From: Trichosphaerium sp. ATCC 40318
Lineage: Eukaryota; Protista; Tubulinea
Direction: 5' to 3'
Assembly (NCBI GenBank): GCA_038496445.1
Contig: JALMLS010000279.1
Coordinates: 1-64,000 of the forward strand
DNA: 64,000 nucleotides
In this document: in pieces, positions 21,201 to 44,675 of the stretch
How positions within the stretch are numbered: the stretch's first letter is position 1
Layout of the letters: every line of letters starts with the position of its first letter
Made by a program: the position numbers and the translations under genes
Notes under the pieces: generated by a model
Databases searched by the model: none
Seen by the model: the letters and a program-made list of their open reading frames with translations, nothing else
Told to the model about the DNA's origin: nothing

Positions 21201-23363
21201 ACAATCAGTTGGCAACTGTGTACAAAGATAAATTTCAAGATATGGCACGGCAACACAGAGTGTGGCAAGAGTCTATTAATGAGGCCAAACGTAAGTCCTA
21301 ATTATTATTACCAGTATTGCAACGACTAACTAGTTTTGTCTAGGTAAAGGGCACAAGCGCTCAAAATCTAGGCGAGGCCTTAAGGAACCAAAGAGTCCAA
21401 GAATGGTACCTACACAACAGAACGCGAGTGTATATGAGTTTATTTGGAAATTGATTTTGACGCTCACTACCGACCCATACCCTGAGGTACGATAGACATA
21501 GTTCGCACTCTTATAAAGGTGGGTGTCGTAGGTTGCACAAATGGCGAATGCATTGGTAGTACAGCTTGCTGGACCACCAACCGATTTGGATCAGTCAGAT
21601 AGCGAGGAATCTTCTTCAAGTGCGTAAATACTTTACTACTGTATTTGCGCACGGTACTAACAACTACCAGCACGCACGCCTAGAAAGACACCGCGATCAT
21701 TGCGTAAATCTAAAAGAGTAGATAAGGGTAGTGCATCTGAGGTGTCACTTCGTTCAACCTTCTACGAGTGGAGCTGCCAATACTTTTCAACAGTGAGTCT
21801 TTTTGTTTTTTCATCAATCTACCATCCAGCCAGCAACTGACACTGATTTAAAGCCTCTTCTTGTTCCACAAGGTGAAGACGAAACATCCCCAGAGTACGC
21901 CGAAAGGATTAGGCGACAGAAGCGATATAAGAGAGTTGTTAAAGCAAGTGCTGCATTGCGTCAAACATCAAATACAGGTATGTGATTTAGTTACATACTT
22001 TATAATTAATTGTTTGTTTTCCCACAGCTAAGAAAGGCCCAAGAAAGTTGGAGAATGAGATTGCTCGATTAGAAAAGCATGAAGGTGATATGGTATCATT
22101 TATGGTGTTCCATCCATTTGAAGATATCATCACAGTAGCCAATGAACCTAATACAATCAGGTACAGCATACCGTTATTTTATACTCTAGTTACTGCTTTT
22201 TTTTTTTTGTAAATTGTACCTAAGTCCCTTGTAGCGTGTGGAATTGGCGTGATGGTGCCAAAAAGAACCAATTCTCTAACTTGAATCCTGCCAATACACG
22301 TATAACATCGATGGATTTACTTAACGATCACGATGTTCCGCTACTGTCAATCGCATCTGATGATGGTGTTGTGCGGATATGGAAGAACATTGATGGTAAA
22401 GAAGAAACGCAGTTGGTGACTGCGTGGAAAGTACTTAGTGACTTGACACCTGTGTCTACGACTGGAAGTGCTGGATTGATCACTGATTGGCAGCAGAAGA
22501 GAGGCTTGTTGGTACGCTCATATATTTTTTGCATTGTTACACCGTGTGAGAATAATTCTGGATGTTGTGTTAATATAACTCATAGTTTGCATCCGGTAAT
22601 GCTAATTGTATTCGCATTTGGGATTTGGAGCGTGAGTTGGCAATTCAAGATATCTCCACTGGTTGTGATACTTTTATGACATGCATGAACTCGGACAAAG
22701 TGCGTGACTCCAACCTCATTGTTGCTGGCTTTTTTGATGGCACTTTGCGGTTATTTGACAGGCGTGTTGGTGCTAAGTACGGGCCAATCGCCACCTTTAC
22801 AGAACATAAAGATTGGATTGTACAAGTATGTGTTTTAATTTGTTTTGTATACATAGATAGTTGTTACTATAATTTGAAATTAAGTGCTTGGTCTGGTTGT
22901 TTTAACCGTTTCTACAGGTGTTCATAAGTGGTGCTACAGGCGATATAATGTCTGGTTCTACTTCAGGTGTTGTCAAATTTTGGCATGAGGGTTCTTCAAA
23001 ATCATACAATGAGATAACAAAAGCAGCCTCTAATTCAGCACTAATGACAGCATTTGCTGTTCACCGACATGCCCCACTATTAGCAACGTATGTAAATATT
23101 TTTGCAGTCTGTTGTCTAACAAATTAATTAGTGGCTCACAAGATCAACGCATTAAAGTAATGAACTTTGAAGGAAAGGAACTCAGCTTGATTCGTTATCA
23201 TGATGGCTGGCTAGGACAAAGGATAGGGCCTGTTTCATCGCTTGCATTTCACCCGTACGGTAGTTGTTGTAGGTAACAAATATTTATTTTTGCTAGGCAT
23301 CGTGTGTTGCTTGCTGCTGGAACTACTGACTCAACAGTATCCATTTATGAAGGAGAAGTGTAA
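18230..23363 (+). CDS. RPTOR: Raptor / KOG1, regulatory-associated protein of TOR (many exons)
   Basis: [107 protein letters not shown] and WD40 regions, ending [21 protein letters not shown]. Confidence 0.97.
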
Positions 23364-26300
23364 TGTTAAATACATGTACTTAATAAAAATATGTCACATA
23401 ACAAAAGTGAGTTATAGTGTAGGTATCTGTGCTCAAGTCAAAACCAATTACAAATGCATTATTAACTAATATGAAGATGACCAAGTGTTTTGCAGCATAA
23501 CTGATAACTTTGTTTTGTATAAAATGGCTTGTTGGTAAATATAAAGCAATTAAACAAAATTAAAAAAAAATTTAACAAAGAATAAATGGCTTAGATAATA
23601 CTTAAGCCTTAACAAAGCTTTATACAACTTTTTAAAAGCATAAACAGTAAAGTGAAAGTACTGAGGGGTTGTTAAAATCTAAGCACAAACTTTAATATAT
23701 TAACTCAACCATAATTCTAGTTAGGGTTGAGAACTTAACCCTAGTCCTAATCAGTGACTGACTTTGAATAACCATTAGGGTTGCAAACCTAACCCTAGCC
23801 TAATCTGCAACTGATGTTTCATAATCATTAGGGTTGTAACCCTAACCCTAGCCCTAAATCAAATTTGCAATTACCAGCCATAACCCTAGCCCTAATAGAC
23901 TAAAATAACGATTAGGGTTATACCCTAGAAGCCAATTAGGGTTTAGGGTTAGGGTTTAGGGTTTAGGAGTATGTACCAACCGTATTTTTTTGTACACTAC
24001 TCTACCCTGTTGTAAAATTTTTTCGATTTTTTTGGCTTTTTTTTATGTTTTTTGCACATACAATCTCCCTGTAGGGTTACAGCAAGATAGGGTTTTTTAC
24101 AAACCCAGGACCTCATCAACAATCTTGCAAACTGTCAAATTCTCATTTTTTTCTTACTTTTTTTAAACAGGCGAAATTTCCGATTCACATTTCGAAACAC
24201 GAAATATTCCTGTCTATTTCTCAACACGATTATTGGGGGAAAAAAAGCCTCATTTTACTTTTTTGACTTTTCATAAATCAAGGATGAGCTCAGATGAAGA
24301 CCTCTCTCTCATAAACATTGAGTTTTCTGATGAGGATGAGCCCTCCAAAGAAGCTGATGGTAAGCCCAGGCTCAGGAGGAAGAGAGTACTAGGTACTAAC
24401 CTCTTTTTTACTCTTTGTTTTTTTTAAAACCCCTTTATTAGTCTTATTTTAATTTTTAAAGACTAATAAAGGGGGTTTTTTTGCTTTTAAATGGTTTTTT
24501 CAAAACCCCTAATTTTTCAAATAAATTTCGAAAAAAAATGATGGTTTTTGTACACGGTTTTCATGTGTCCGATTTTTTCGTTACCATGCGGTTTTTTTGC
24601 ATGGTAGAACCAAACCCAAACGAGGGTTTCGTAACACGCAGAACGCGTGTGTGTTGTTTTTCATTTGGTTTTGGTTCACACTGTTTTATTTTGCTTTAAT
24701 TTTCAACAGCGAGCTCGCCGCGGCATTAGAACACGTATATCGCGTGTTAGAAAGTCGCGCTAGTTGGCGGTTGGTTTTGGTACACAATTAAATTGTGTAC
24801 TTTTTTTTAATTTTTTTTGTTGTTTTGCTTTTTTTACAGACCGCGAGCTCGCTGTACGATTTTAAACACGCTTTTAACGTGTTCGTACATGACCGCGAGC
24901 TCGCGGTCGGTTTTCGTACACATAAAAAGTGTGTACTATTTTAAAAACCGTTTTTTTTTTTAAAAGTCTTGCTTTATAACTGATTGCTTGCTCGGTATAT
25001 GGTATACAACACTTATTTATTGTGTTCGTACCTGACCTTGAGCTCGCGGTCGGTTTTTGTACACATAAAAAGTGTGTACTTTTTAAAAAACCGTTTTTTT
25101 TTTAAAGTCTCTTTATAACTGACTGCAAGCATGCTGTTTTGAACGTAACACGTATTTAATGTGTTCGTTTCCGACCGCGAGCTCGCGGTCATATTTTCAA
25201 CACGAAAAACCGTGTTTGTATTTTCGTTAGTTGGAATTATTTGATGTGCCACTTCTAATACTCTTTTTAGCTCCAACAAGTCCTGGTTGGATGATTGTGA
25301 GTACCCATGGAAACCACAACACTGAAACAAAAATTGTGGGTACTCTAATTGGAGAACACAGAGATGTTATCTTTGGTTTTGAGTAAGTTGGTTGTTTTTT
25401 TTTTTTTTTGTTTTGTTCATTTTTTTTTTTTTTTTACCCATTTAATTTCACGTTCGACGCAACACGCATGTTCGTAAACGTAGCTGCCATTTATTTTTAT
25501 TTATTTTTTGTTTTTTTTTTTTTTACTGCCAATTCATTTCAATTAATTTATCTATGTAGAGGTGTTATCATAGCCAACCAGTTGGTTTATGCTAAAACCA
25601 TGCCCATCAAGAGGATGAAGAGATGTCTAAATGGGTTTTTTGTTGCCAGCTTTGACAATGTGCTGGAGTCCCAAATAACTCCTAACAACAAGCTGAAGGC
25701 AGCATTCAAGGTACGTTTTCTGATACATACACGCGCGGGCCGTGTTCGTTTTATTTCGTTTTTTTTTTTTTTTTTTTTTTTTTTTTTCTGATTTTTTGTG
25801 TTTTTTTCAATTATTTTTTTCCTCTTTTTTCCCTCAAGTATTCATAACACAGTTTTCATGTGTCGAAACCGCGACCGCGAGCTCGAGGTCGTGTGTGAAC
25901 ACTTAAATATACTGTTGTAAAATCGTCGCCTTTTGGTGTTTTTTTTTTTTTTTTTTTTTTCAATTATTTTTTTTAATTAATTTGTTGCTGTAGGAGAGAT
26001 TTCCATTTGTTGAAGGAGTAGACCAACTGCAGAAGTTTATCAAAGACGTCAGAAAAATCTACTCCTCGGACGAAGAAAAGTGGTGGAAGCCGATGCACTT
26101 CGAAGGCAACTACACCAGAGATTACAAGGAGCACGAACCCATGCCGAGAGAACACGGAGATGAGGAATCGGAGGTAGAGGAGAAGGAGAGGAATGGATGG
26201 ATTATAAGCTGCAAGTGGAGACAGTTGTATTGGCAGGTGCTACTCTGGACTGGCATATTCTACACAGCCATGGGACTTCATGTCACAGATTCTTGGTACT

Positions 26301-27376
26301 ACATTGCCCTTCTTTTGGTCCATTTTAGAGATTCCTTGAGCTTTGGCAATGATTCAGATTTCCATCTCTTTGTGGAGTAAGTAACAATTTTCGCGATATT
26401 TTTTTAACACGCGTTCAACGTGTTCGAAAACGAACGACGTTCATTTTTTGTTTTTTTTTTTTTGTTTTTTTTTTTTTTATTTTTAACTTTTATGTAGCTA
26501 CATGAAGACAGGCACCAATAAATTGAATGGCTGCATCATAAAGCCATCAATACAAAAGGGCCTGCTAAGAGGGATTGCTGCCAACTCTATCAACAAGAAG
26601 TATCTGAGAGTGAAGAAGCCCTCATTTTACAAAGGCCCCTTGGACATGTCACACATAGCTTGTTTTTTGAATGTCAGAGGAGTCAACCCCAGGAACATTA
26701 TACAGAAGATGCCTATTTATGAAACCTTCACCAAAAGGTTTGTGCTTTGCCCTATGCCTATTGTTTGGTGTGATGAATACAATACAGACCCTATTGTTGG
26801 CTTTGGAGTTGGAGATGGAGCACACTGTCTTTTGACAGAGTTGGCGTACGTTCGCGAATATTTTCGAACACGTATTTTACGTGTCGGTCGACCGACCGCG
26901 AGCTCGCGGTCGCGTTCGAACACTAGATTTTCCTGTCGTAAAAAAACCTCGAACGACGAACCTTTTTTTTGTTTTTCTGGTTTTTTACTTTTCCTTACCT
27001 TATTGTTCAATTGTTTCTTACTTGTTTGCCTTAGACAAAATGCAGCTAAACCTGCAAATTTGCAATCAAAAATGTGGAGTGGATAAATCCTTTCGCCAAG
27101 ATGCAAGCGATAGCGATCTACTGCACCAAGATCAACTTTCTGCAAAGTCTGACCACTCCAGACTCCAAGGTGGATCGCTACCGCCACCTGTTCAAGATGT
27201 GGTGCGACGACGCGGGCCAGGTCTTCGATTACCAAGCGGAGGCGGGAGATATAGGTAAGGTGAATTTTGCCATATGGGGAGCCAGCAGAGTCAAACCTCA
27301 GCTCAGTCCTGCTCAATGGAAAGAGGTGAGGGTTGTTTTTTTTTTTATTTTGATCTTTTTTTTTTTTTTTTTTTCC
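23127..27376 (+). repeat. Left arm of a ~4.25 kb inverted repeat (pairs with 33600-37842)
   Basis: Near base-for-base reverse complement. Identical ORFs appear on opposite strands, e.g. 26093-26380(+) = 34594-34881(-) and 24233-24427(+) = 36548-36742(-). Confidence 0.97.
23721..23967. repeat. Telomere-repeat-derived array: ~53 bp units TTAGGGTT..AACCCTAG, then a (T)TTAGGG run
   Basis: Units start at 23721, 23775 and 23828, with partial units at 23881 and 23912. Run ttagggtttagggttagggtttagggtttagg at 23936-23967. Confidence 0.85.
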
Positions 27377-29687
27377 GCAAGTATTTTTAAACAGAGGTTT
27401 CGCGTGTCGTAGATCGTACCGCGAGCTCGCGGTCGCGTACGAACACTAAAATACTCTGTTGTAAAACCAACGATTTTTAGTTTGTATTTTTTTTTTATTT
27501 GTATGTTATAACTGATTGTTTTGTTTAGTTTTTGGTTAAGATGAATCTATACTTTCCATATGTGACCAACTGGAAAGAAAGCAAGCAGTTTGTTAAGGCT
27601 GGCATGTTTTTTGAGCCATTGGACAGTGCTCTGATAGCAGAATTGGTTGCATCTGCTGAAAATGTGGTACGTAGGCTTTCGTCTTTATTCTAACACGCAT
27701 TTCGCGTGTCGAAGTACAGACCGCGAGCTCGTGGTCGGTTTCGAACACGCATTTTGTGTGTTGTATAAAGTTTCGGTCGTTCACTCACACTCTCATCATA
27801 GCACACCAAACATCCAGTGGGCTACAGGACTAGAATATTGGCTCATGCTGCATGGGCAGAGTTACCTCTCCATGCCAGAATAGCAGTAAGTCAAGTACCT
27901 TTTATATTTTTTTTTTGAAAAAAGGGTTTGTGCCTAACTTGTACATTTAGTTTGTCAAAGCACTGACCTGCAGGGTGTATCATGAGACCAATCAATCTTA
28001 TTATTTGCAGAGGTACAAGAACTGCAGCCAATATATCACACAGGTACAAAAAAAAAAAAAAACCAATCGGTCAGTTTTTTTTTGTTGTTTTTTTTTTGTT
28101 GTTTTTTTTTTTTTTCTTCTCCCTCCACCCTCATCTAACTTTAACTCGAGGCCTTGAGACAGCTGAACGAGCTCGGTTGGTACGAGCTCTCGTGGGACAC
28201 GAGCACCGAGGAGGAGCACGTGAATTTCGCGAACAGCCTGCGTCTGTGTATATTTCGCCAGCTTTTGATGTACGACCTGCACTTGCTTTGGACCGGCACC
28301 ACAGAAGATGGCCAAAAATTGCCCAAGATGGTTATAGAAGAGATGAAGTACAAGCAAGCAGCAACGGTGCTCTCCTTCTCTCACACTGCCTTGTTGTCTA
28401 TGCAGTGCTTGGATTTGCCTGAGGTGGAGGAAGCAAGTAAGTGTCATTTTTTTTTTTTTTACACTACACATCCAATGTCGCGCTCGGCGCTACACGCGAA
28501 TCGCCTGTTCGTCGAACGTGGCGGTCGTACCTCTTTTCTTTTCTTTTTTTTTTTTTTTTTTTCTCTCCCTAGTTTACTTTTAAACTAATGTCCTTTGTAG
28601 CTCCTCAGTTAGAAGCCATGTTGGAGAATGCCTACTTACCTTTTAGAGATACAAGGGCCAAAAACACTGCCAATGCAAGGGCAAGTGAAGGCAGTGCCAT
28701 AAACAGGCATAAAAAAAAAGGTAAAGGCAAAGGCAAGAAAAAGAAGCCTATGGTTAAAACAACTCCTCCTACATCAGATGAAGAAGAAGATTTTGAAGAA
28801 AAAGAAGATGAGAATGAGGATGAGGTTGAGGATGAGGTTGAGGATGAGGTTTCAGAAGAAATCCAGCTGCAAAAAAGACCAAGAAGAAGCAGCAGAGCAC
28901 ATGGGTTGTTCAAAAAATCAAGTGAGCCTTGGTTTGAAAGTGTAGTAACTCACAGACCGATCGTACTCGGTACGAACACGATCGCGATGTGTTGGTTTTT
29001 TTTTTTTTTTCCTTTCTCTTTTTTTTTTTTTTTTTTTCATAAACCAATGTACCAGTTGATGTTATTTAGATTCTGATAAACCACAGCCTTCTACATCAAA
29101 ACGTCATGTAAATAAAAGGTCAGGACCAACAAAGATGACCACAAGAAGCAGTCAGAGACTAAAACGAGGTACGTTAAATGTGAACACACATTCTCTGTGT
29201 TCAAATTCGACCGCGAGCTCGCGGCGGGTCGCCGACACCTACTTTACCTGTTGAAAAATAGCATTTTTTATGCGAACTTCACATGACTTACTTGGAGTTT
29301 TTTTTTGTAGCTGGTAAAATAGATTTGACCCAGTTGAGTGAAGATGATGAAGAGAGCAAAGAAGAGGAGGAAGAAGATAATAAGAAAGGTAAAGAAGAAG
29401 AAAGTGATGATGATGAAGAAGAAGAAGAAGGAGAAGAAGAAATCATAACTGAACAACTGGTAGAGAGAGCTGATTTGCCACCAAGGAAACAAAGAAGAGG
29501 CAGAAGAGTGTTGAAAACTCCAGGTAAAATACCAACTAGATCTTCTGGTGCAAAAAAAAGAAAGAGAAACAGCATTGGCAAAGCAGGAAGGGCCAACAAG
29601 AAAAACAAGACAGGTAAAAAGCCTGTTGAAAACGAAGACGAGGATGGTGAAGGAGAAGAACAACTCAGTGAAGAAATCTTTGAGTAA
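24284..29687 (+). CDS. Gene X: ~950 aa orphan protein, 13 exons, weak ParB/Srx-like motif, acidic/basic low-complexity C-terminus; one 1-nt frameshift near 27048
   Basis: Phase-consistent exons: 24284-24385, 25231-25382, 25560-25710, 25994-26376, 26498-26845, 27035-27325, 27529-27666, 27802-27885, 27951-28043, 28151-28436, 28601-28939, 29070-29168, 29311-29687. The missing A near 27048 is present in the inverted copy. Motif PIVW..FGVGDGAHCL. Confidence 0.8.
24707..29226. repeat. Dispersed intronic 18-bp palindrome GACCGCGAGCTCGCGGTC within a longer GTGTTCG..CG(A/T)ACAC hairpin unit
   Basis: Perfect copies at 24891, 25173 and 26894. Near-perfect copies at 24839, 25034, 25873, 27418, 27719 and 29209. 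Degenerate copies near 24707 and 28956. Confidence 0.92.
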
Positions 29688-30164
29688 AACACATTGTGTA
29701 ACTTTACCTTAATAAATATAGTTTTAATGTAGTTTAATTTTTTAATGTAGTTTAAAACGTGATAGTAACTTTGTCAACTTTTTTTGTCAATATTTACGAT
29801 GTTGTCAACTTTGTTACAAAATGCTGAAAATTATTTTCAGCACGCACAGCCAGAAACAACGTATTTGAGTTGAAAATACAAAGTGATGCCCGATTTAGAA
29901 AAAACACGTTTGGGTTTTTTTTTTGCTTTAAATGTACATGTGGTTTTACAGTATCTCACATGGTATGTACTACTACACCTTAAACAGTACATAGTGATGC
30001 ATTTTGCAAATTTTTAACCCGTTTAAGGTTTTTATTTCACAACAGCAGCATATTGTACTGTAAGAGAGTTTTTGCGCGTAGAAAAGCATAGTGTAGGTAC
30101 TTGCGAGATGGTTTACTTTATTATCTTTTGATTTTGCCCCATACTTTTTTACAATTGGTGAAAT

Positions 30165-32330
30165 ATGTCTACAGTGCTTCTAACATACCATGAGATATCA
30201 ATAGTTACTTTTTTGTAACATGGGAGGTAAGTATAACAAAAATCTGTAACAACTTCAAGAAGTGTATACACAGCCTTGAACATTGTGTTATGAGCGTTTG
30301 AAAGATCCTACATCACTTAACAAGCCATACTTACTATTTGTGTTTGATGTTGGACGCTAATGAGCACCATTACGGCCAGCAATACCATCAATAGGTAATG
30401 TCAAGCTGCTGGCATGGAACCAAGGAAACAACCCTGTTTTTTATTGTTCAAAAGAGAAAAAGTGGGCTCGACAATATAGTCACATACGCCATGCAAACAC
30501 ACACAAAGGGATTACATGGTATTACCGTTGCAAAAGACGCGGGATTTGTACAGCTAAGTTACAGATTGTCTCAAGAGCTGGTAAAGACGCTGAACATGCT
30601 CAAGTGTTGGATATCAGACAAACAGAAGGTACTATAAACAACAACAGTTTAATTGAAGTTTAAAATAACCAAAATTGTTAGGGCATTCTCTACAGTGCCT
30701 CCCTATTCCCGTTCATAAATTAAAACTTGGAACTGGCGCAAAAACTAGCATTAAAAAAGATCTGGCACGCAAAATACAAAACGAAGTGTGGTACGAAAAA
30801 TGACATCAGCATCTATCACTAATTGTTTTTATGTACTAGTATAAAGCTTTTTTACAAGATGAATCTAAAGATCCTCTTAATGGCTATGAGGTACTAACGC
30901 TAATAACATGACATACCTGGCGCGTAGAGTGCACCACGAAAGGATATGCACCATGAGGTATTGGTTTTTTATTATGCTTGGATTAACATGCCCACAGGTT
31001 TACTCAAACATTCGGATGATGTACCCCGAATCATCTAGAATTGTTCAAGCCACAAATGATGTAATATCATTTGTCGAGCCAGATTGTGACAAAAAAATAC
31101 ACAACCTTGATACCAGTGTCCTCTTTGTTGATGGCACCTTTGGCATTGCGGATATTAACGCTCAAGTACGTGTAGTAAAAGTAAACAAGATTTTTTAGCT
31201 CATATATTTTACTTTAGGTTTTGTTTTTTTGGGTAAAGGCTGTTGGTGACACTACACCAAGGAACTTGTATTAGCTTTGCCATTATGAAGAATAAAACAC
31301 TGGCAGAGTATGAATACGCGTTTATGCACCTAAAGAGTGTATGTGGTGCTCCTTTTGAGCGTTTGATGACTGACGGAGAGACAAACATGAAAAGAGGTAC
31401 TTTTTTTGCCAACATTTGTTTTACAACTAGTAATATTTGTTTAGCCGCTACAAATGTACTGAGACCCTTAAAAATAGCCCAGTGTATTTACCATATAGCA
31501 GAAGCTCATAGACGAAGGCGAGCAAGGCTAGGATTGAAAAAAGAAGGCGTGAAGAAGAGAATAGATGGTGTAAGCTTGTTTCTTCTGAGCTGATATACGA
31601 AAAAATGAAAAAGCATTCTATCGTAAATGGCACGCCTTTAAAAAAGAAGTGATTGAGAAGAGCGATGACTGCAAACAATTTATTAAATACTTAGCTAATA
31701 CTTACATTGAGGTTGCAAACGAAATAACCGAGTACACTACATAATTCATACCACAACCTTTTTCTTATTTTTTCCTTACTTTTCGTTTTAAACTTTTTTT
31801 TTTACTAGCTCTCCTCCATCTACTGGGCTCTTTGGACTGTTAAGAATACGCCTTGGGAGCACTGTCGAACGAATAATATCAGTGAGGGCAACAACTGCGA
31901 TGTCAAGAATGTGTTAACATTTGAGGTACTACTAAGCGAGCTTGTGATGTTGTGTTTTCTTCTCTGGCAAACTATGCAAAGTGCAGCTTAAAGGATGGCA
32001 TGCGTACAGTAGAAGGAATACCTGTTGGCACTCCAAAGCTGTACAGAGAAGAGACGCAAAGAGCAAGCTGAGAAAATCAGAAAGCGGTGCATGTGCTAAT
32101 GCTACATTAATTTTTGCTTGTAATGTTGTTTAGTGAAACGGCTTAATACTCCGCTGCTAAAATTAAAAGCACAACAAAAAGCTGCGAGAGAAGCTAAAGA
32201 AGCTAAAAGAATCCAAAAAGAAAAAAACAACGCCTTCAACATAACCAACACCTTACAGTGCCATTAAAGGTTAGAATCTTGGGTAAATTTAAGCTATTAA
32301 CTTTGCTCATAGCTTCGAAAGAATTAAACA
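30165..32330 (+). mobile_element. Mutator/MULE DDE transposase gene with introns, probably partly decayed (ends approximate)
   Basis: FLYWCH/WRKY-like finger TWYYRCKRRG..GHSLQC. Catalytic VLFVDGTF, RLMTDGE, CIYH (CxxH) and RTNNISEGNN. Confidence 0.88.
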
Positions 32331-33599
32331 ATCATAATCAAAAAAAAATCAATGAAAAAATACCTTGCTACAAACTTTAATAAACTTCATTTCCTCCTCT
32401 ATTGTGGCGTTTACTTGTAGCTGATGAGACGCCTGTAGTATTAATAAACGTGAAGTTCTTGGTTTGTTTTTAAATAGCTTAGTTGTGGTTCAGGGCTTAT
32501 TTCTACCAACTACTTATGATTTTTTGGTCAACTTTCTGTCAACTTTTTGTGTCAGCAATTATTACTGTAGGTATTTCATGAACGTAATATAAAGGTCTTT
32601 CAACCTAAACAATATATATGCGCTTCACAGGCTATGCTTTGTTAATAATAAAAAAACAGCTGAGAGGTTGAGAACAGGTTCACAGAAAGTTGACAAAAAA
32701 AAATTGACAGAAGTTGATATTACCTGTCACCGTTTAATAAAAAACAACTTGTAGGTTTTTTTTTTCTTTTTTTCAGAGCCAAAGTTTTTTTGAATATTAA
32801 GACAATTGTACATGTGTTTTTAAATTGAAAAAAAAAAAAAAAAAAAAGAGAGCTATTATTCAGCTTCTTTGTACAATAAAAAAAGACTTGTTGTTTGGTG
32901 TGTATTATTTATATTATTTATTTATTTATTTTATGTGTGGTTATAGTTTATATAAAATTTCAAGTGCAAATATAATGAGATTTTTAGGGTAAAGGTTGGT
33001 GTAGTTTGGAAGGTAAGGTTTGGAAGGTGGGGGGGGGGGGGGGTTAAGTGCAAGGTTGGGTGTAAGTTAATGTAGTTTAATCTTCCTCTAATCCTGGTTT
33101 TTGGCTTTTTTTAGCTTGCTTTGACAAGCTCATAGTTGTATCTCTCTCTTGAAGCTTTTCAACATGGTTGTTGCAAATCAGCCATGTTTGTGTTTGGCCA
33201 CCTTTTCAAAAAGGCCAAACAGTAATGGATTTGTCTGCTAACTGTACCTTGATGTCAATTTCCTTGTGTATTTTTAAAGACAGCCATTATTTTGGATAAA
33301 CTTATGTGCATTACAAAAAAAAAAAAAAACTCAGTAAAAATTAAAAAGCAATCTATCTATTGTATCAATAGTGGTAAAAGTAAGTACTTTGGTGGTAAGC
33401 ACAGTTTTGGCCCCTTCAGGTTCATAAAAGAGACATCTTTTTCAGACACAGCATTTCGTAGGTTGGATTACTCGAACAGGCTGGAAGTGTGTCTCTCACT
33501 ATGGCTGGAGTTTGGTTTTGTCAATGAGCTCTTCCAAGTGTTCAGGATCGCTATGACATCAGCAATAGGTCCAAAGCTCTTTATGATCATTGTTAATGT

Positions 33600-36500
33600 G
33601 GAAAAAAAAAAAAAAAAAAAGATCAAAATAAAAAAAAAAACAACCCTCACCTCTTTCCATTGAGCAGGACTGAGCTGAGGTTTGACTCTGCTGGCTCCCC
33701 ATATCGCAAAATTCACCTTACCTATATCTCCCGCCTCCGCTTGGTAATCGAAGACCTGGCCCGCGTCGTCGCACCACATCTTGAACAGGTGGCGGTAGCG
33801 ATCCACCTTGGAGTCTGGAGTGGTCAGACTTTGCAGAAAAGTTGATCTTGGTGCAGTAGATCGCTATCGCTTGCATCTTGGCGAAAGGATTTATCCACTC
33901 CACATTTTTGATTGCAAATTTGCAGGTTTTAGCTGCATTTTGTCTAAGGCAAACAAGTAAGAAACAATTGAACAATAAGGTAAGGAAAAGTAAAAAACCA
34001 GAAAAACAAAAAAAAGGTTCGTCGTTCGAGTTTTTTTACGACAGGAAAATCTAGTGTTCGAACGCGACCGCGAGCTCGCGGTCGGTCGACCGACACGTAA
34101 AATACGTGTTCGAAAATATTCGCGAACGTACGCCAACTCTGTCAAAAGACAGTGTGCTCCATCTCCAACTCCAAAGCCAACAATAGGGTCTGTATTGTAT
34201 TCATCACACCAAACAATAGGCATAGGGCAAAGCACAAACCTTTTGGTGAAGGTTTCATAAATAGGCATCTTCTGTATAATGTTCCTGGGGTTGACTCCTC
34301 TGACATTCAAAAAACAAGCTATGTGTGACATGTCCAAGGGGCCTTTGTAAAATGAGGGCTTCTTCACTCTCAGATACTTCTTGTTGATAGAGTTGGCAGC
34401 AATCCCTCTTAGCAGGCCTTTTGTATTGATGGCTTTATGATGCAGCCATTCAATTTATTGGTGCCTGTCTTCATGTAGCTACATAAAAGTTAAAAATAAA
34501 AAAAAAAAACAAAAAAAAAAAAACAAAAAATGAACGTCGTTCGTTTTCGAACACGTTGAACGCGTGTTAAAAAAATATCGCGAAAATTGTTACTTACTCC
34601 ACAAAGAGATGGAAATCTGAATCATTGCCAAAGCTCAAGGAATCTCTAAAATGGACCAAAAGAAGGGCAATGTAGTACCAAGAATCTGTGACATGAAGTC
34701 CCATGGCTGTGTAGAATATGCCAGTCCAGAGTAGCACCTGCCAATACAACTGTCTCCACTTGCAGCTTATAATCCATCCATTCCTCTCCTTCTCCTCTAC
34801 CTCCGATTCCTCATCTCCGTGTTCTCTCGGCATGGGTTCGTGCTCCTTGTAATCTCTGGTGTAGTTGCCTTCGAAGTGCATCGGCTTCCACCACTTTTCT
34901 TCGTCCGAGGAGTAGATTTTTCTGACGTCTTTGATAAACTTCTGCAGTTGGTCTACTCCTTCAACAAATGGAAATCTCTCCTACAGCAACAAATTAATTA
35001 AAAAAAATAATTGAAAAAAAAAAAAAAAAAAAAAAACACCAAAAGGCGACGATTTTACAACAGGATATTTAAGTGTTCGTACACGACCTCGAGCTCGCGG
35101 TCGCGGTTTCGACACATGAAAACTGTGTTATGAATACTTTAGGGAAAAAAGAGGAAAAAAATAATTGAAAAAAAACACAAAAAATCAGAAAAAAAAAAAA
35201 AAAAAAAAAAAAAACGAAATAAAACGAACACGGCCCGCGCGTGTATGTATCGGAAAACGTACCTTGAATGCTGCCTTCAGCTTGTTGTTAGGAGTTATTT
35301 GGGACTCAACACATTGTCAAAGCTGGCAACAAAAAACCCATTTAGACATCTCTTCATCCTCTTGATGGGCATGGTTTTAGCATAAACCAACTGGTTGGCT
35401 ATGATAACACCTCTACATAGATAAATTAATTGAAATGAATTGGCAGTAAAAAAAAAAAAACAAAAAATAAAAAAAAAATAAATGGCAGCTACGTTTACGA
35501 ACATGCGTGTTGCGTCGAACGTGAAATTAAATGGGTAAAAAAAAAAAAAAATGAACAAAAAAAAAAAAAAAAAAACAACCAACTTACTCAAAACCAAAGA
35601 TAACATCTCTGTGTTCTCCAATTAGAGTACCCACAATTTTTGTTTCAGTGTTGTGGTTTCCATGGGTACTCACAATCATCCAACCAGGACTTGTTGGAGC
35701 TAAAAAGAGTATTAGAAGTGGCACATCAAATAATTCCAACTAACGAAAATACAAACACGGGTTTTTCGTGTTGAAAATATGACCGCGAGCTCGCGGTCGG
35801 AAACGAACACATTAAATACGTGTTACGTTCAAAACAGCATGCTTGCAGTCAGTTATAAAGAGACTTTAAAAAAAAAACGGTTTTTTAAAAAAGTACACAC
35901 TTTTTATGTGTACAAAAACCGACCGCGAGCTCGAGGTCAGGTACGAACACAATAAATAAGTGTTGTATACCATATACCGAGCAAGCAATCAGTTATAAAG
36001 CAAGACTTTTAAAAAAAAAACGGTTTTTAAAATAGTACACACTTTTTATGTGTACGAAAACCGACCGCGAGCTCGCGGTCATGTACGAACACGTTAAAAG
36101 CGTGTGTTTAAAATCGTACAGCGAGCTCGCGGTCTGTAAAAAAAGCAAAACAACAAAAAAAAATTAAAAAAAAAGTACACAATTTAATTGTGTACCAAAA
36201 CCAACCGCCAACTAGCGCGACTTTCTAACACGCGATATACGTGTTCTAATGCCGCGGCGAGCTCGCTGTTGAAAATTAAAGCAAAATAAAACAGTGTGAA
36301 CCAAAACCAAATGAAAAACAACGCACACGCGTTCTGCGTGTTACGAAACCCTCGTTTGGGTTTGGTTCTACCATGCAAAAAAACGCATGGTAACGAAAAA
36401 ATCGGACACATGAAAACCGTGTACAAAAACCGTCATTTTTTTTCGAAATTTATTTGAAAAATTAGGGGTTTTGAAAAAACCATTTAAAAGCAAAAAAACC

Positions 36501-36691
36501 CCCTTTATTAGTCTTTAAAAATTAAAATAAGACTAATAAAGGGGGGTTTAAAAAAAACAAAGAGTAAAAAAGAGGTTAGTACCTAGTACTCTCTTCCTCC
36601 TGAGCCTGGGCTTACCATCAGCTTCTTTGGAGGGCTCATCCTCATCAGAAAACTCAATGTTTATGAGAGAGAGGTCTTCATCTGAGCTCAT
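33600..36691 (-). pseudogene. 3'-truncated inverted copy of gene X (exons 1-6), with frameshifting indels
   Basis: Homology stops in the poly-T tract of intron 6 at 33600. One-base indels near 35306, 34417 and 33838. Confidence 0.85.
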
Positions 36692-37007
36692 CCTTGATTT
36701 ATGAAAAGTCAAAAAAGTAAAATGAGGCTTTTTTTCCCCCAATAATCGTGTTGAGAAATAGACAGGAATATTTCGTGTTTCGAAATGTGAATCGGAAATT
36801 TCGCCTGTTTAAAAAAAGTAAGAAAAAAATGAGAATTTGACAGTTTGCAAGATTGTTGATGAGGTCCTGGGTTTGTAAAAAACCCTATCTTGCTGTAACC
36901 CTACAGGGAGATTGTATGTGCAAAAAACATAAAAAAAAGCCAAAAAAATCGAAAAAATTTTACAACAGGGTAGAGTAGTGTACAAAAAAATACGGTTGGT
37001 ACATACT

Positions 37008-37254
37008 CCTAAACCCTAAACCCTAACCCTAAACCCTAATTGGCTTCTAGGGTATAACCCTAATCGTTATTTTAGTCTATTAGGGCTAGGGTTATGGCTG
37101 GTATTGCAAATTTGATTTAGGGCTAGGGTTAGGGTTACAACCCTAATGATTATGAAACATCAGTTGCAGATTAGGCTAGGGTTAGGTTTGCAACCCTAAT
37201 GGTTATTCAAAGTCAGTCACTGATTAGGACTAGGGTTAAGTTCTCAACCCTAAC
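37008..37254. repeat. Inverted copy of the telomere-repeat-derived array
   Basis: cctaaaccctaaaccctaaccctaaaccctaa at 37008-37039, followed by the hairpin units. Confidence 0.85.
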
Positions 37255-37609
37255 TAGAATTATGGTTGAGTTAATATATTAAAGTTTGTGCTTAGATTTT
37301 AACAACCCCTCAGTACTTTCACTTTACTGTTTATGCTTTTAAAAAGTTGTATAAAGCTTTGTTAAGGCTTAAGTATTATCTAAGCCATTTTATTCTTTGT
37401 TAAATTTTTTTTAATTTTGTTTAATTGCTTTATATTTACCAACAAGCCATTTTATACAAAACAAAGTTATCAGTTATGCTGCAAAACACTTGGTCATCTT
37501 CATATTAGTTAATAATGCATTTGTAATTGGTTTTGACTTGAGCACAGATACCTACACTATAACTCACTTTTGTTATGTGACATATTTTTATTAAGTACAT
37601 GTATTTAAC

Positions 37610-37842
37610 ATTACACTTCTCCTTCATAAATGGATACTGTTGAGTCAGTAGTTCCAGCAGCAAGCAACACACGATGCCTAGCAAAATAAATATTTGTTAC
37701 CTACAACAACTACCGTAGGTGAAATGCAAGCGATGAAACAGGCCTATCCTTTGTCCTAGCCTGCCATCATGATAACGAATCAAGCTGAGTTCCTTTCCTT
37801 CAAAGTTCATTACTTTATGCGTTGATCTTGTGAGCCACTAAT
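37610..37842 (-). pseudogene. Duplicated last two exons of Raptor (fragment)
   Basis: Reverse complement of 23127-23363 with several small deletions. Confidence 0.9.
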
Positions 37843-38310
37843 AGCGCTTCGCTTCAAAATGCATTCCACTTTGAGGTTTATGCATGTACCGCTTCGCTAA
37901 ATAATGCATTTCACTTTAGGTATCATATTGTTGTTTCACTACAATATCTTGGATTTCTTCATTTTTTTCGCATGAAGTGCTTCGCTTCAGAATGCATTCC
38001 ACTTTAGGCACCGCATATGTGCCGCTTCGCTGAATAATGCATTAGGTGTCACATGCGCACCGCTTCGCTACAGTATCTTAGATTCTTTTAATTTTTTTTT
38101 CGCATTAGATTTTGTAATGGGCTTCGCTTCAGAATGCATTCCACCATAATCTCTGCATGCCTACCGCTTCGCTACATAATGCATTCCACTTTAGGTCCCG
38201 CATGCGTGCCGCTTCGCTACAAATTGTTGGATTCTATGAGTTTTTCGCTTTTTTGCCGCTTCGCTACAGAATGTTGTCGTTGTGACCCTATAATATATCG
38301 CTTCGCGATA
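37843..38310. repeat. Minisatellite: ~42 bp monomers with core (C)GCTTCGCT..AATGCATTCCACTTTAGG, grouped into ~135-145 bp trimers
   Basis: GCTTCGCT near 37846, 37891, 37979, 38024, 38062, 38121, 38166, 38211 and 38257. Confidence 0.85.
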
Positions 38311-39849
38311 TATTTCTACACAGTGCTTTGCACTGTTACATAGTACTATATGTATAATATCGGCAACATACGTTGCCTACATGCTGTTTAGCAACAGCAT
38401 AGATCCCTAACCCTAACCCCCCCTATTAAAACTTATTATTTATTAATCTCTTTTACAGCCAAGTATGACTTGATCGATATGTATGTGTCCAAGGAAAATG
38501 AAATTATTTGTGTTGTGCAAATGGATGATGATCATGATGAAGAAAAGTGGACTTTACAACAAGCTTTAAAAAGAAATGTTGTGGTAGATAGTTTCTTAAA
38601 AACTATTTTACCAAAAAAATAAAAAATTATCTTAGTTACCAATAAAAGATTATCTTATATCTCATAGTCATGAATAGATATGAAAATAAATAATATCTCA
38701 TTATGTTGCCATGTATGTATAGATATAAATTTAAATTACAATTTAGCTACACATGATATACTAAAAACTTTGTGTATATGAGAAATGTGCATACATATTT
38801 TTTACCAAAAAAAAAAACCAATTACAAGCTCAAAATCGCTTACATCTATATAACTCATCACTATGGATACCTACAAATCAATTATTGCTTGTACCATGTT
38901 TATATGGCCTAATAACATATATGTACATACATAAAGTAATTAAAAATACATTTGTAAATGCAGCCTCCAAACACAACTGCATGGTAAAAATATTTCAAAA
39001 TTTACAAAAAAAAAAAGTTCACGTGTCGCTCACGGGCCATGTAATGCACGAATATCATTTTCGATGCTGCACACCATAATAATATATGCCTGTGCCTAGC
39101 GGCACAGCCATGAAAGTAGCAAAATCTAATAAAATCAAAAAAGTAGAGGTTTAGGTAACCTTAACCCTAACCCCTAACCCAGTCTCCACCACACCAACAC
39201 TTCCTAAACATTTTTTTTCCATTTACTACTGACGTTTTATATAGACTAGTCACCACACACTTAGTATTTTATGAATTCTAACGAAACTACTGCCATTCGA
39301 ACCGCAGCACCCAAATGCACCTACAACAGGAGTACAGGTACTTTAAACCATTTTTCCAGTCTGTGAAAATATACCAATAATTTGTTAAATTTTTTTTCTA
39401 GCTAAAGGGTTTTTTCCATATGAAGAACATTGAAGTTTTTTGTGTTTTGTGTACTGTACTTTAATAAATGAATCACTATTGTATGCTTATATAAAGTCTT
39501 GTTTTATGAGTATATGGTGTCTGAGTTATGCCCAAAAATTGAGGGCAAAAATGCCTTATTGTTGCACTAAAAATGAGGCATTATTGGACCAACAATGCAG
39601 GCTATTTTAAGGCTAATAAGTGAACCAGTTGCTTGCTATTTGGCCCAAATATGAGGCTTCAAAGCCCAAAATTACAAGGCAATGCCTCATATTTGCTCAT
39701 TTTTTTTGGCAAAAACAAGGCAATTTGATGAAAAATAAGGTTGTATTTGGTGGCAAAAAAAAGGCTTTTACAAAAAAAGCCTTATTTAGTTTCAACCCTG
39801 TTACAATTGTTTATCATGTGATTTCATAGGTCTATTGGCATGTATTTAG

Positions 39850-41185
39850 CCAATATAAAGCTGGTAAAAAAATAAATCCATTTAAATGATCCACATGGAC
39901 ATTTAAAATCACAGGTTTCATTACAATAGTGGCTCAAACCATGATTCCAACAGTACAAAAATTCTTTTTGCATCAAATTTATGACATCTGGATATTTATT
40001 TTCTACCTTTTTGATACATCTATTTTAATGGTTCTATTATAGCTGTTGTTAATGCAATTAAATAACATACTTTATAAACCATGTAAACATTCTAGGTGCA
40101 AGTCTTTGAAGTATTTTCATGTTCCAAATATATTTTCAAGCTCTTTTTTTAAAACTTTTTTGTAATGTCCCAAATCACATAATATAAACACATTTTCTCC
40201 ATTTCATATAAAATTTGATGATGAATCTCCATTTAAAACCATTGCATTGATGGGTTGTAAAAACTTTTTGTTTTAAACTGTGATAGAATTTTTTGTTTGA
40301 CTTCTTTCATATCTTTTGATGTGCCAGGATGATTACTTAGATATTCAAATGTATGTAATTTAAAATCAACTTTGTTAGCTTTACTAAGTACACTACAATA
40401 AACAATCTTTTTATTCTTAGTTGCAAATGCTAATTTATTTAAAAAAGATAGATTATTGATAAAACTTACCAAATGTTACTCCATGTGGTGCTTTGTTGTA
40501 GGCTTGTTGGACCAGCTTGTATCTATTGCCAATGAGATTTGGGGGTTTTTTCCAATTATTTTGGTTTGTTTTTTCTGTAACTGTTCTTCACAAGCTTTTG
40601 ACACAGTTGGTCACACAAAATTTGATATTTTCATGGCTTCAATTATGATTACACATAGCAAGTTCATTGTTTTGAGTGTATTCTCAAATTTGTTTACACT
40701 AACCATAGAAAATAAAGCTGTTGTTGTTGTCTTTACATTAACTGTATAAAACTGTTCATCTGATGAAACTGTGTATTTATCCATTGAATGAGTAACATGA
40801 GTTTGTTCTATGTTACAAAAGGTGCATTTGAGACAAAACTCACTCACTATTCCTTTTTTTTTTTCAGTGATAATTTTGAATTTTCAGCTGTCACACAATT
40901 CACATGAGATTTTTTATATTACATCCAAAAATATATCTGTTACCACAATAATCTGTTTTGTTTTTTGATTTTGTGTTTTTATGGATATTTGTGGTTTTTC
41001 TTGATTGATTTTTCTATGAAGAAATAGTTTTAAAAAGCAGCTGTTATAGTTAAAAGTCCCATCATAAAACAGAGTTTGCCTTGGTAATAAAGGTTTGATG
41101 TGACTTTTAGAAAAAACAAACTGCTTACAATTTGCACACACAGTATGATTTTTGTGTGTTGTGGACCATGCTTTACTTGTCATAT
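39850..41185 (-). pseudogene. Decayed DDE transposase of the Mutator-like (PF20700-type)/Kolobok-like group
   Basis: Ordered motifs despite stops and frameshifts: CANC..CTFC zinc ribbon, AIDTSWSNK, NHPGTSKDM, NGDSSS, CDLGHYKK. Compare the family pattern DGTW..NH.GSS..ME..DGDSS..C..H..K. Confidence 0.6.
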
Positions 41186-41811
41186 GGTAACAAATTTGTA
41201 ATATTGCAAAAATAACAACATTTAACAAAATTTATTGATAAAGTTTACAAGTGTTTTTACACTCTTGTTTTTGCATTGTTTGCTTGTTTTGCACCACTAA
41301 ATTTCTGTTTAGAATACTATTGCAATTTTAGAATGGCGTTTAAGCTTTTTTTTTTGTAAAAGTTGGACAATATCCCACAAATGCATTCTTTACACACATG
41401 TGGTACTGTTACAGGCAGTTTAAAGCACTGGCATGCCTTTTAAGGAAAGTAGTGACTTAGTATTGCACTTTTAAGAGATATGATAAAGTATGTAGTAATG
41501 TATGGTTCAAATTAAATCCTTAAACCTAGCAAATGATCATGCCAATTAGGGTTAGGGTTAGGTTTACAACCCTATGTTGCATTGCAACCTAGCTAGGGCT
41601 AGGGTTAGGGCTTGTCTTTTTTTATGCACTGCTACTCTCGATAGGTTACTGTATAGGATAAGGCTAGAGATAAGGTTGGCTTTTATTCTGAGAGGCCCTT
41701 GTATTTGCTTTGGTATTTGTTGGAGTTTAATATAATTCTACTTTTTATATTGTGTGTTGTTTAATATTCATTTACTTTAATTTATTTTTTTGTGTATGTT
41801 GGTTTTCATTA

Positions 41812-42871
41812 CAGGTCTAAAAATTAAAGTGGTATATACCAGTTTTTTTATGGTATATACCACTTTTTTCAACAAAATGGTATATGGACTGGTATATACC
41901 ATTTTGAAATACCACTTTTTTTAGAAATTAAGTGAATAACAAAGTGGTATATGGAAGTGGTATATACCACTTTTCATTCACATAATGAGACCTTCTAAAA
42001 ATGGTATATAAAGTGGTATATACCACTTTTTTATGGTATGTGGTATATACCACCTTTTTATTGGTATATACCACTTTTATGGTATGCTTCAAGAAGGTCA
42101 TTAAGGAGCTTTTTGGTAATGGGTTTTCTTGTTGAACGATCACAGACGTCATATATTGAACGGTGCGTAGGGACCTTAGTATATCATAGAATCTAACCAA
42201 ACCAGGCTCATTCGAACCGCAGGACCTGATTCCAGTACCAGCATTAAGAAAACTATATTGCAGGTATTATACAGACGTTCGTGGGTACCAGACAAAGTTT
42301 TATTTTATTTTCGTTTGATATACATTAACCGACCTCCGTAGGCCTTAGTAATTGATGGATTCAGGTGGGATCACTTTCATTAGGTGCGCAGCATGTTTTT
42401 ACAGTAGGTACAGCAAGCTCATGAAGATGGACGAATTTTTCAGACGCCCATAGTAATGTAACTGTAGTGGACATTGTCCAAAACTTGTAACTCACAAACT
42501 GTGTATTAAATAAAGTGTATTTTCTGGAATTGCAGGTGTACCATAAGTAGGCATAAAGTGGTATATAAAAGTGGTATATACCATGAAAAACTGGTATAAA
42601 AAAGTGGTATATAACTGGTATATACCTAAAAAAAGTGGTATAAAAAAGTGGTATATTTTTTTTTTTCTGGTGAAAAAAAGTGGTATATTTTCTGTTTTTA
42701 TACCTGTTTTTTTTGGTATATTGTTGGTATATTTGGTCAATATACCACTTTTTTTGGTATATTTCAGTCAAAATATACCACTTTTTTTGGTATATACCAT
42801 AAAAAACTGGTATAAAAAAGTGGTATAAAAGTGGTATATACCAAAAAAACTGGTATATTTTTTTAGACCTG
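41812..42871. mobile_element. Non-autonomous TIR element (MITE/foldback-like) with TTA target-site duplication, PIF/Harbinger-like
   Basis: TTA|CAGGTCTAAAAA at 41809-41823 and TTTTTAGACCTG|TTA at 42860-42874. Subterminal AAGTGGTATATACC arrays at 41827-42080 and 42555-42857. Confidence 0.8.
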
Positions 42872-43079
42872 TTACAAAATGACTTTACAACAAAATATAC
42901 CACTACTTGCATGGCATGAATAACTATCAAAACTTATACTTTATATTAATTTTATGCACATTTAACCATATCATTCACAGGCTTGCATCCACAAAGACAA
43001 TAGCATAAAACCAATTACAACAGAAAAATTTTAATACATTTATGAGGTTTCTGTGACTTTACAGTTTTCTTGTATTGAA

Positions 43080-44488: not shown

Positions 44489-44675
44489 TGTGTATCGTTC
44501 AAAATTATACCGACTCTCGAGTTGTTACTATTGTTTGATGCGAGGTGGCTAAGACTAAATGCTAACCAAAAATTTGTATGGTATTCAGCCGGCTAAGGTT
44601 TTTTACCAGCAAAAACTTAACCCAAGTAAAAACTTAATCTGTATCGTAAATTTTCTCAATTTTTTATCTAGCAAC
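44489..44675. promoter_or_regulatory. Putative bidirectional promoter between PSMA5 and RPS23
   Basis: Only 187 bp separates the two divergent start codons. Confidence 0.6.

Follow-up and report, generated by a model that had tools for sequence, protein, structure and literature searches.

A long inverted repeat at the Raptor locus of Trichosphaerium sp.: a case for duplicated host DNA rather than a giant Mutator-like element

Introduction

Two long inverted arms around a transposase-like open reading frame raise the question of whether this locus of Trichosphaerium sp. ATCC 40318 is a transposon or a rearranged piece of the host genome. The sequence-only reading of the window, which is the whole 64,000 nt stretch of contig JALMLS010000279.1 analysed here, had offered two answers: a giant foldback Mutator-like element (MULE) carrying host cargo, or an inverted duplication of flanking DNA induced by a transposase. 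The first would make the locus a record-size Mutator element that had picked up a portion of an essential gene of the TOR pathway. The evidence does fit a duplication of the flanking DNA in inverted orientation; both transposon-based readings are unsupported. We hold with moderate confidence that template switching recently produced an inverted segmental duplication of host DNA here, and that the locus is not a mobile element.

Architecture of the inverted repeat

Self-blastn of the window gives a sole inverted match, which pairs 23127-27379 with 37842-33597. The alignment has 4266 columns, of which 98.9% are identical, and includes 14 mismatches and 28 gap openings. Ungapped pieces and global alignments of the arms are concordant with this result and confirm the presence of the inverted repeat in the assembled sequence. 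The arms described previously (23127-27376 and 33600-37842, around a 6.2 kb spacer) are therefore upheld at their outer ends; their inner ends are off by 3 nt, because two more bases match past one mismatch.

The left arm (23127-27379, forward strand) begins with the last two Raptor exons and the 3' UTR, continues through telomere-like repeats and ends within an orphan gene, here called gene X, of which it contains the promoter and exons 1-6. The telomere-like (TTAGGG/TTTAGGG) and 53-bp repeats lie at 23721-23967, between the Raptor stop codon and gene X, and are mirrored at 37008-37253 in the right arm (33597-37842, reverse strand). The spacer (27380-33596) consists of 6217 nt of unique sequence with gene X exons 7-11, a MULE-like relic and 0.87 kb of non-coding DNA.

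Gene X spans 24284-29687 on the forward strand. A canonical GT-AG model with strong donors predicts 11 exons and a product of about 775 amino acids. Exons 1-6 (24284-24359, 25271-25382, 25560-25710, 25994-26376, 26498-26845 and 27148-27325) are in the left arm. The remainder, which had been placed in the spacer, corresponds to exons 7-11 at 27529-29687 (27529-27666, 28151-28219 or to 28441, 28573-28969, 29070-29168 and 29311-29687), with a tentative exon 8/9 junction. No homologue was found with Pfam on all exons, in PDB, in viral contigs or by a homologous-protein search, the last with a length filter by which a full-length relative could be missed.

The Raptor 3' end and the polarity of the arms

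The penultimate Raptor exon (23132-23259, forward strand, 42 residues) matches residues 1222-1264 of the Arabidopsis thaliana Raptor structure 5wbi in PDB (E=1e-7) and also residues 1271-1312 of the human Raptor structure 5h64. It is in frame with upstream Raptor, contains the FHPY motif and is followed by a predicted last exon (23297-23363, forward strand, 22 residues) with the stop codon TAA at 23361-23363. The intron that precedes it (23090-23131) is only 42 nt long, and of its sequence only the 5 nt next to the 3' splice site lie within the left arm. The arm starts with ATTAG at 23127 and the exon at 23132, just as had been noted for the outer breakpoint. Excluding the last Raptor intron, all open reading frames and splice phases in the left arm are intact.

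The right arm is different. Its two-exon Raptor pseudo-copy (37611-37837, reverse strand; exons 37714-37837 and 37611-37677) carries, in its first exon, three deletions that shift the frame and a single non-synonymous change, and the conserved FHPY is gone. The truncated copy of gene X exons 1-6, gene X' (33651-36691, reverse strand), has kept all its splice sites and is disabled by a 1-nt deletion in exon 3, which leads to a premature stop, and by a second frameshift in exon 5. By the criterion of an open frame or of conservation, all five exonic indels are assigned to the right copy. Because every frame-breaking exonic difference sits on the right-arm side, the right arm is, judged by its coding content, a derived inverted copy without function. 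The in-frame continuity with upstream Raptor exons and the intact frames of the left arm indicate that it is the native, working original.

This polarity bears on the proposal of a giant cargo-carrying foldback MULE, in which the 4.25 kb arms would be the TIRs and the Raptor 3' end would be captured. The proposal draws on the long inverted arms around a transposase-like frame near the centre. Against it, the left arm holds the only Raptor 3' end, in frame and with its start inside a 42-nt intron, and it is the right copy that is degenerate while the left one is intact. A search beyond the right arm (past 37842) for displaced original Raptor exons found none. At the outer ends of the arms there is no TSD of the 8-11 bp expected for a foldback or long-TIR MULE: the flanks, caaatta before ATTAG on the left and agcgctt after CTAAT on the right, show no repeat, in agreement with the sequence-only reading. 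Since the left arm continues Raptor, and there are neither displaced exons nor a TSD, the arms are not the TIRs of an inserted element. With a relic in the spacer that has short inverted ends of its own, the foldback MULE is effectively excluded.

The Mutator-like relic in the spacer

The MULE transposase that had been reported in the middle of the spacer is only partly borne out. The candidate is a compact Mutator-like element of about 2.97 kb (29759-32723, forward strand), proposed from motif and TIR evidence. Its ORF fragments lie at 30364-30628 (WYYRC, zinc-finger-like), 30928-31165 (VDGTF), 31239-31396 (MTDGE), 31445-31567 (C-IY-H) and 31809-31925 (TNNISEGNNCDVK). LFVDGTF at 31121, LMTDGE at 31366 and TNNISEGNNCDVK at 31869 form a D…D…E signature, with about 58 residues between the two D and about 115 between D and E, and C-IY-H (C-x2-H) is 22 residues past the second D. 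This spacing is of the Mutator/IS256 type, and the match is a lead rather than proof. The patterns for the first D and for E each occur once in the six-frame translation of the window, where 0.25 and 0.05 occurrences are expected. The candidate TIRs (29759-29790 and 32690-32723) are an imperfect, short 34-bp pair with 28/34 identical positions and a score of 34, compared with 18±2.7 for shuffled sequences (maximum 28). The window contains five paired GTCAA motifs, four of which lie on either side of the MULE-like ORFs, and the AT-rich flanks of the compact element, AGTTTAAAA and TTTAATAAAA, are similar and non-identical.

Homology searches of the relic came back empty. The five ORF pieces matched nothing in Pfam (E<=0.1 and E<=10), in NCBIfam or in PDB by phmmer, and no homologue was found by the homologous-protein search or in viral contigs. 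A phmmer search of 1.84e9 representative proteins returned two matches, to TPR and PPC repeat proteins, which were rejected as spurious. The AlphaFold model of the piece with the second D has a pLDDT of 51, too low for a fold search. The zinc-finger and first-D exons join through clean introns of 53, 49 and 37 nt; no simple canonical in-frame intron connects the first D to the second, or leads on to the E exon, and no intact transposase frame was obtained. The transposase-like frame has probably decayed, and the assignment of the spacer ORF to the MULEs is a tentative one.

Could this element, when active, have copied the flanking DNA in reverse by aberrant (alternative) transposition? The DDE-motif relic and its candidate TIRs inside the spacer speak for this. 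Reversed-ends alternative transposition of Ac/Ds-type elements is a known source of inverted duplications in maize, and there one breakpoint falls exactly at a transposon terminus. The present locus shares the outcome, with flanking DNA duplicated in inverted orientation close to a DNA transposon. It differs in that neither breakpoint is at an end of the candidate element: 29759 is 2.4 kb from the breakpoint at 27379, and 32723 is 0.87 kb from that at 33597. No MULE TIRs were detected at the arm edges or spanning the spacer, the only pair to emerge being that at 29759/32723, and there is no TSD or footprint. The 64 kb window has no second copy of the element or of the arm-bounded unit, and tblastn of the MULE pieces finds no MULE sequence in the arms. 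With breakpoints away from the candidate ends and a frame that looks broken and has no homologue, a transposase-induced origin is improbable, and the relic seems to be a bystander of the duplication.

Breakpoints and palindromic units

The two breakpoints adjoin low-complexity or repetitive sequence. At the inner one, a T19 tract directly precedes the end of arm homology, as the earlier mention of a poly-T tract implied, and a 95 nt palindromic, hairpin-forming unit (27375-27471, forward strand) starts within 4 nt of that end. At the outer one, only 3 nt separate the end of the right arm (37842) from a 45/142-bp satellite (37846-38290) with the palindrome GAATGCATTC, which bears out the satellite junction described before. 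Hairpin and breakpoint coincide in this one instance only, with a chance probability of about 3%. Microhomology at the junctions is at most 2-3 nt, an estimate of limited weight because it was made without the ancestral sequence.

The 27375-27471 unit is one of about ten, all of them within gene X introns. Each comprises an ACAC…GTGT hairpin and a GACCGCGAGCTCGCGGTC core with its own donor-like GTACG motif. The units are always in the sense orientation, and in three introns the unit starts 0-10 nt past the 5' splice site. A covariance model finds them at 24536-29263 and in the mirror image of this region, and nowhere else in the 64 kb. The region gave nothing above threshold in Rfam and tRNA scans, and Pfam recognised no domain in the ORFs at 32-33.6 kb and 38-43 kb. 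A comparison of 32724-33596 with 37843-43000 revealed no similarity of the kind that would betray former contiguity.

Differences between the arms

Between the arms, indel events outnumber substitutions by 2:1, most are in homopolymers, and 1-nt changes dominate. Eleven of the 14 substitutions fall in repeat-rich introns, and 2.5 kb of unique arm sequence has none at all. The outermost 160 nt, which are non-repetitive coding sequence, contain 5 differences; the next 1.1 kb inward contain 3, and divergence elsewhere in unique sequence is about 0.3-0.5%. There is no comparable rise at the inner edge.

Much of this pattern could come from an assembly artefact, in which a chimeric or fold-back long read, or a mis-join at repeats, created a right arm that is not genomic, and the differences are consensus errors or another haplotype. 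The dominance of 1-nt homopolymer indels is that of a poorly polished copy, and the long tract free of substitutions, the junctions beside low-complexity or repeat DNA and the gathering of errors near the outer junction, as expected of a join with thin coverage, all agree with it. Substitution divergence between the arms (0.33%) is also near the 0.2% between transcript and genome. Other observations oppose it. A spacer of 6.2 kb is not a feature of the usual fold-back read artefacts, a return to flanking sequence needs two independent chimeric junctions, and another haplotype would not bear three frameshifts in a conserved Raptor exon. Moreover, 966 nt of nearby single-copy exons, compared with a same-species MMETSP transcript reached through a proteasome alpha-5 exon, show no indels and 2 synonymous SNPs. 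Because these exons match the transcript without indels, the assembly is of good quality nearby, and the differences between the arms exceed the background error rate. We consider an artefact unlikely, and still the most serious of the alternatives.

Further transcripts were sought in metagenome contigs with degenerate patterns, once for gene X exon 6, a MULE exon and a proteasome control and once for gene X exon 6, the MULE exon and a Raptor exon. Neither scan gave a match, even for the control, so the contig collection does not contain these transcripts. No record was found for the exact sequence of a single-exon PPR ORF.

The steep fall in divergence from the outermost 160 nt to the next 1.1 kb could also reflect an older palindrome, its interior homogenised by arm-to-arm gene conversion and only its outer edge escaping, so that the duplication would be much older than a divergence of 1% suggests. 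The several disabling changes accumulated in right-copy exons would agree with greater age. Gene conversion should, however, also have mended exons 3 and 5, whose frameshifts lie far inside the arm, and the lack of a similar rise at the inner edge does not fit. We give this explanation little credence.

A template-switching model

In the template-switching model that we prefer, the 4.25 kb block would have been reverse-copied 6.2 kb downstream, between the decayed Mutator-like relic and the satellite, through two template switches of the FoSTeS/MMBIR type during replication or break-induced repair. A strand that was being synthesised on the left arm in the direction of gene X may have stalled where the T19 tract meets the hairpin unit (27376) and rejoined at 33596. 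The other switch would join 23127 to 37843, beside the palindrome-bearing satellite. The cluster of five differences at the outer junction is consistent with mutagenic repair synthesis, because such synthesis is frameshift-rich (PMC3039667).

The locus resembles non-recurrent inverted duplications attributed to template switching in replication (FoSTeS/MMBIR; PMC2621351), in which synthesis is error-prone (PMC3039667). The inverted copy is a few kb from its source, the two junctions have little or no homology and no TSD, the breakpoints are beside hairpin-forming sequence, and small, mostly frameshift mutations occur in the copied tract and near the junction, although low consensus quality would mimic this last feature. 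The difference is that here the sequence shows the geometry, which arm is native, the lack of a TSD and how far the breakpoints lie from the candidate transposon ends, while we infer the mechanism, including the role of the hairpins, and the number of switches and the microhomology are provisional.

Comparison with other systems

Pack-MULEs, long-TIR MULEs and foldback elements have the same inverted arms, host gene fragments and DDE-motif ORF between them. Here, by contrast, one arm is a native functional gene end, no element termini bound the arms, and neither a TSD nor another copy in the window is found.

Mu killer of maize, which silences Mutator, arose naturally as an inverted duplication of part of MuDR. 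Likewise, the Trichosphaerium duplication is beside a Mutator-like element, and the promoter of the copy reads back towards it. The arms differ in that they are the Raptor 3' end and the 5' half of gene X and are free of MULE sequence; being host-derived, they would yield a hairpin RNA that targets host genes, not the transposon.

The palindromic units recall introner-like elements in being repeated intronic units of about 95 nt, in sense orientation only, with a donor-like GTACG. They differ in being confined to one gene, and the introns of unrelated genes in the 64 kb window have no copies. It is a speculative and rather improbable idea that they are a new introner-like element of an amoebozoan that built the gene X introns and, as a hotspot of replication stalling, set off the inverted duplication. 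If it were true, antisense transcription started by the right-arm copy of the gene X promoter would run through the Mutator-like relic and the 3' half of gene X, and the locus would be a counterpart of Mu killer made of host sequence.

Conclusions

The evidence favours an ordinary inverted segmental duplication of recent origin, with a decaying copy. The locus carries a caution for annotation, since a DDE-motif ORF between inverted repeats is insufficient to define a transposon. Its value is as a small and clean example from a little-studied protist lineage, in which both breakpoints are at palindrome-bearing repeats and the copy is frameshift-rich, the pattern expected from error-prone template-switch repair.

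Inverted Repeat and Gene Content of Its Arms

Comparison of the window with itself yields one long inverted match, 23127-27379 against 37842-33597. The alignment spans 4266 columns, of which 98.9% are identical, and contains 14 mismatches and 28 gap openings; a unique spacer of 6217 nt lies between the arms (27380-33596). The inverted repeat described in the sequence-only reading is real in the sequence, and the match ends place its arm coordinates within 3 nt of those first proposed.

Raptor is encoded on the + strand and runs upstream of the repeat. The translation of its penultimate exon (23132-23259, +) matches solved Raptor structures, the FHPY motif included (residues 1222-1264 of A. thaliana 5wbi, E=1e-7; residues 1271-1312 of human 5h64). 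This exon is preceded by a 42-nt intron (23090-23131, +), and the left arm starts at 23127, 5 nt ahead of the intron acceptor. The last exon (23297-23363, +) ends with a stop at 23361-23363. The obvious 37-nt candidate for the last intron of the left copy (GTAGTT…GCTAG, in the region 23260-23296) would lead into the last exon in the wrong phase, and the frame is kept solely by a 24-nt intron, 23273-23296 (GTAACA…TAG), which adds GSCC; a 2-nt deletion in the right copy brings the 37-nt intron back into phase and destroys the conserved FHPY. An interstitial telomere-like block (23721-23967, mirrored at 37008-37253) follows the stop codon of Raptor and precedes gene X; it is made of mixed TTAGGG/TTTAGGG with a 53-bp repeat that carries TTAGGG/CCCTAA in both orientations.

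Gene X, an orphan gene downstream of Raptor, was modeled by a search for in-frame canonical introns and has 11 exons on the + strand from the ATG at 24284 to 29687, encoding about 775 aa. Its donors are strong (GTAAGT or GTACGT), its acceptors are T-rich and the exon 8/9 junction is the sole uncertain one. The introns are poly-T-rich and 120-900 nt long, compared with 37-53 nt in Raptor and the MULE-like gene of the spacer. Exons 1-6 are located inside the arm and exons 7-11 inside the spacer, where the sequence-only reading had placed the rest of the gene. No relatives of gene X were found in Pfam, PDB, viral contigs or a homologous-protein database search, the last being length-filtered and run with exon-sized queries, so that full-length relatives were out of its reach.

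Origin of the Right Arm

Raptor runs into the left arm without interruption and in frame, and the gene X of this arm is intact. The right arm (33597-37842) keeps every splice site but its exons are broken. The Raptor exon copy has one non-synonymous change (23208) and three frameshifting deletions (left-arm positions 23152, 23226 and 23254), the last of which takes the conserved PY out of FHPY. In the truncated gene X', exon 3 has lost 1 nt and runs into a stop, and exon 5 carries a further such deletion. The right copy thus accounts for all five indels that fall in exons. Variants that tell the copies apart include 23208 T/A, 23254 CG/deletion, 25663 C/deletion, 26558 G/deletion and 27271 C/G. 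Nothing similar to a displaced Raptor end was found beyond the right arm, and no target-site duplication is seen at the outer flanks, as had been noted from the sequence. Together, the native in-frame left arm, the broken right arm and the lack of a displaced Raptor end or target-site duplication exclude an element that has the arms for terminal inverted repeats and that integrated into Raptor, and the proposal of a giant foldback MULE is contradicted. On the - strand, the gene X' exon 6 copy is open across the inner junction into the spacer (33468-33806, …QWKEV…STLTMIIKSFGPIADV…), potentially giving a chimeric transcript or ORF if a right-arm promoter is active.

The differences between the arms are unevenly spread, with indel events outnumbering substitutions 2:1. 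The outermost 160 nt of the left arm, non-repetitive and coding, has 5 differences, the next ~1.1 kb of mostly unique sequence 3, the ~1.5 kb of repeat- and poly-T-rich introns at 24429-25939 25, and the last, mixed ~1.4 kb 7. An older palindrome whose arms were homogenized by gene conversion would account for the divergent edge but leaves the internal frameshifts unexplained. The main rival is an assembly artefact that produced the right arm, to which the homopolymer-indel signature of the differences and the repeats adjoining the junctions both lend weight; against it stand the 6.2 kb spacer, the two chimeric joins required and frameshifts that are not expected in any Raptor allele. The proteasome alpha-5 gene (43023-44611, - strand, five exons) provides a control on assembly quality. 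Over 966 nt, its exons differ from a conspecific MMETSP transcript (JGI sample 3300016894) by two synonymous SNPs and no indels, implying that the assembly is not generally indel-prone; the match is essentially 100%, so a transcriptome of this species is available. After this transcript, the best matches of the gene are proteins of Amoeba proteus and Arcella (76-79% identical), and the genome is probably amoebozoan.

The MULE-Like Relic in the Spacer

The spacer had been said to hold a MULE transposase. Its ORF fragments show a candidate Mutator/IS256-like motif pattern: a zinc-finger-like exon (WYYRC…C), then LFVDGTF, LMTDGE, C-IY-H 22 residues later and TNNISEGNNCDVK, with a D-D spacing of ~58 aa and a D-E spacing of ~115 aa. 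In a six-frame translation of all 64 kb, the regular expressions for D1 and E each matched once (0.25 and 0.05 expected), on a common strand and in the right order. Recognition by profile or homology failed: no piece matched Pfam (E<=10), NCBIfam, PDB or viral contigs, the homologous-protein database search was empty, and an unrestricted phmmer search with the MULE piece against 1.84 billion representative proteins returned just two spurious repeat proteins. The 5' exons connect via neat introns of 53, 49 and 37 nt, and no simple canonical intron links the second-D and E exons in frame. The gene is probably decayed. Elsewhere, a - strand ORF at 40917-41231 contains LFYDGTFNY, which resembles the DDE first-aspartate motif. 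The ORF has no Pfam match and is unlike any of the MULE-like pieces; the resemblance is probably due to chance.

A short inverted repeat flanks the relic (29759-29790 against 32690-32723, 28 of 34 positions identical; alignment score 34 compared with 18±2.7 for shuffles), and of the window's five paired GTCAA motifs four fall at these ends, outlining a candidate compact element of ~2.97 kb (29759-32723). At its right end, 32514-32723 forms a local hairpin of ~210 nt (32520-32548 against 32673-32701, 86% complementary) made of the relic's GTCAAC motifs, which is a MITE-like derivative or else a set of subterminal binding-site repeats. The inverted duplication itself, as part of the proposal, stands. 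If a transposase had induced it, one breakpoint should coincide with a terminus of the element. The ends of the candidate are instead 2.4 kb and 0.87 kb away from the breakpoints, which removes the structural basis for a transposase-induced rearrangement, and no MULE-like sequence was found in the arms; the reading is unsupported.

Breakpoint Repeats and a Model for the Duplication

On the donor side, homology ends at 27376-27379, directly after a T19 tract, in agreement with the proposed poly-T breakpoint, and at most 4 nt from the start of a palindromic unit (27375-27471). An ACAC…GTGT hairpin together with a perfectly palindromic core, GACCGCGAGCTCGCGGTC, makes up this unit of ~95 nt. A covariance model of eight units, scanned over the window, located copies only at 24536-29263 and in the mirror image (34025-36313), all in gene X introns and all scoring higher on the sense strand; none was found in other genes or in the remainder of the 64 kb. 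The units are at 24850-24952, 24993-25095, 25132-25236, 25832-25927, 26852-26953, 27375-27471, 27677-27778 and 29168-29263, with weaker ones at 24536-24816 and 26391-26466. The start of the unit is 0-10 nt past the 5' splice site in three introns (5, 7 and 10), and it has its own GTACG motif. The units look introner-like but are confined to gene X within the 64 kb.

At the acceptor junction, 3 nt separate the end of the right arm from a satellite with periods of 45 and 142 bp (37846-38290; unit GCTTCGCTTCAGAATGCATTCCACTTTAGG, containing the palindrome GAATGCATTC). As originally described, the outer breakpoint abuts the satellite and corresponds to a position ~5 nt upstream of the Raptor exon (23127 versus 23132). 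Microhomology at the junctions is at most 2-3 nt. Further along, at 41826-42880, copies of a 12-nt palindrome, TGGTATATACCA, are densely arrayed in direct and inverted arrangements, within an AT-rich (~30% GC), gene-free stretch (38.3-43 kb) whose ORFs have no Pfam domains; the array is possibly a remnant of another repeat-ended element. Three distinct palindrome-bearing repeat families occur inside 20 kb.

The most economical reading is that the inverted copy arose in one rearrangement with two template switches. The left-arm copy would have been placed, inverted, between 33596 and 37843, with one switch where synthesis ran into the poly-T tract and hairpin unit. Repair-type synthesis is strongly frameshift-prone over its whole tract (PMC3039667), and the MMBIR model predicts junctions that are nearby, inverted and poor in microhomology (PMC2621351). 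A template-switch mechanism of this kind, which we infer, fits both the excess of indels in the derived copy and the clustered differences at the outer junction. The ties between the duplication and the local palindromic repeats are interesting but unproven; the feature itself is probably an ordinary inverted segmental duplication.
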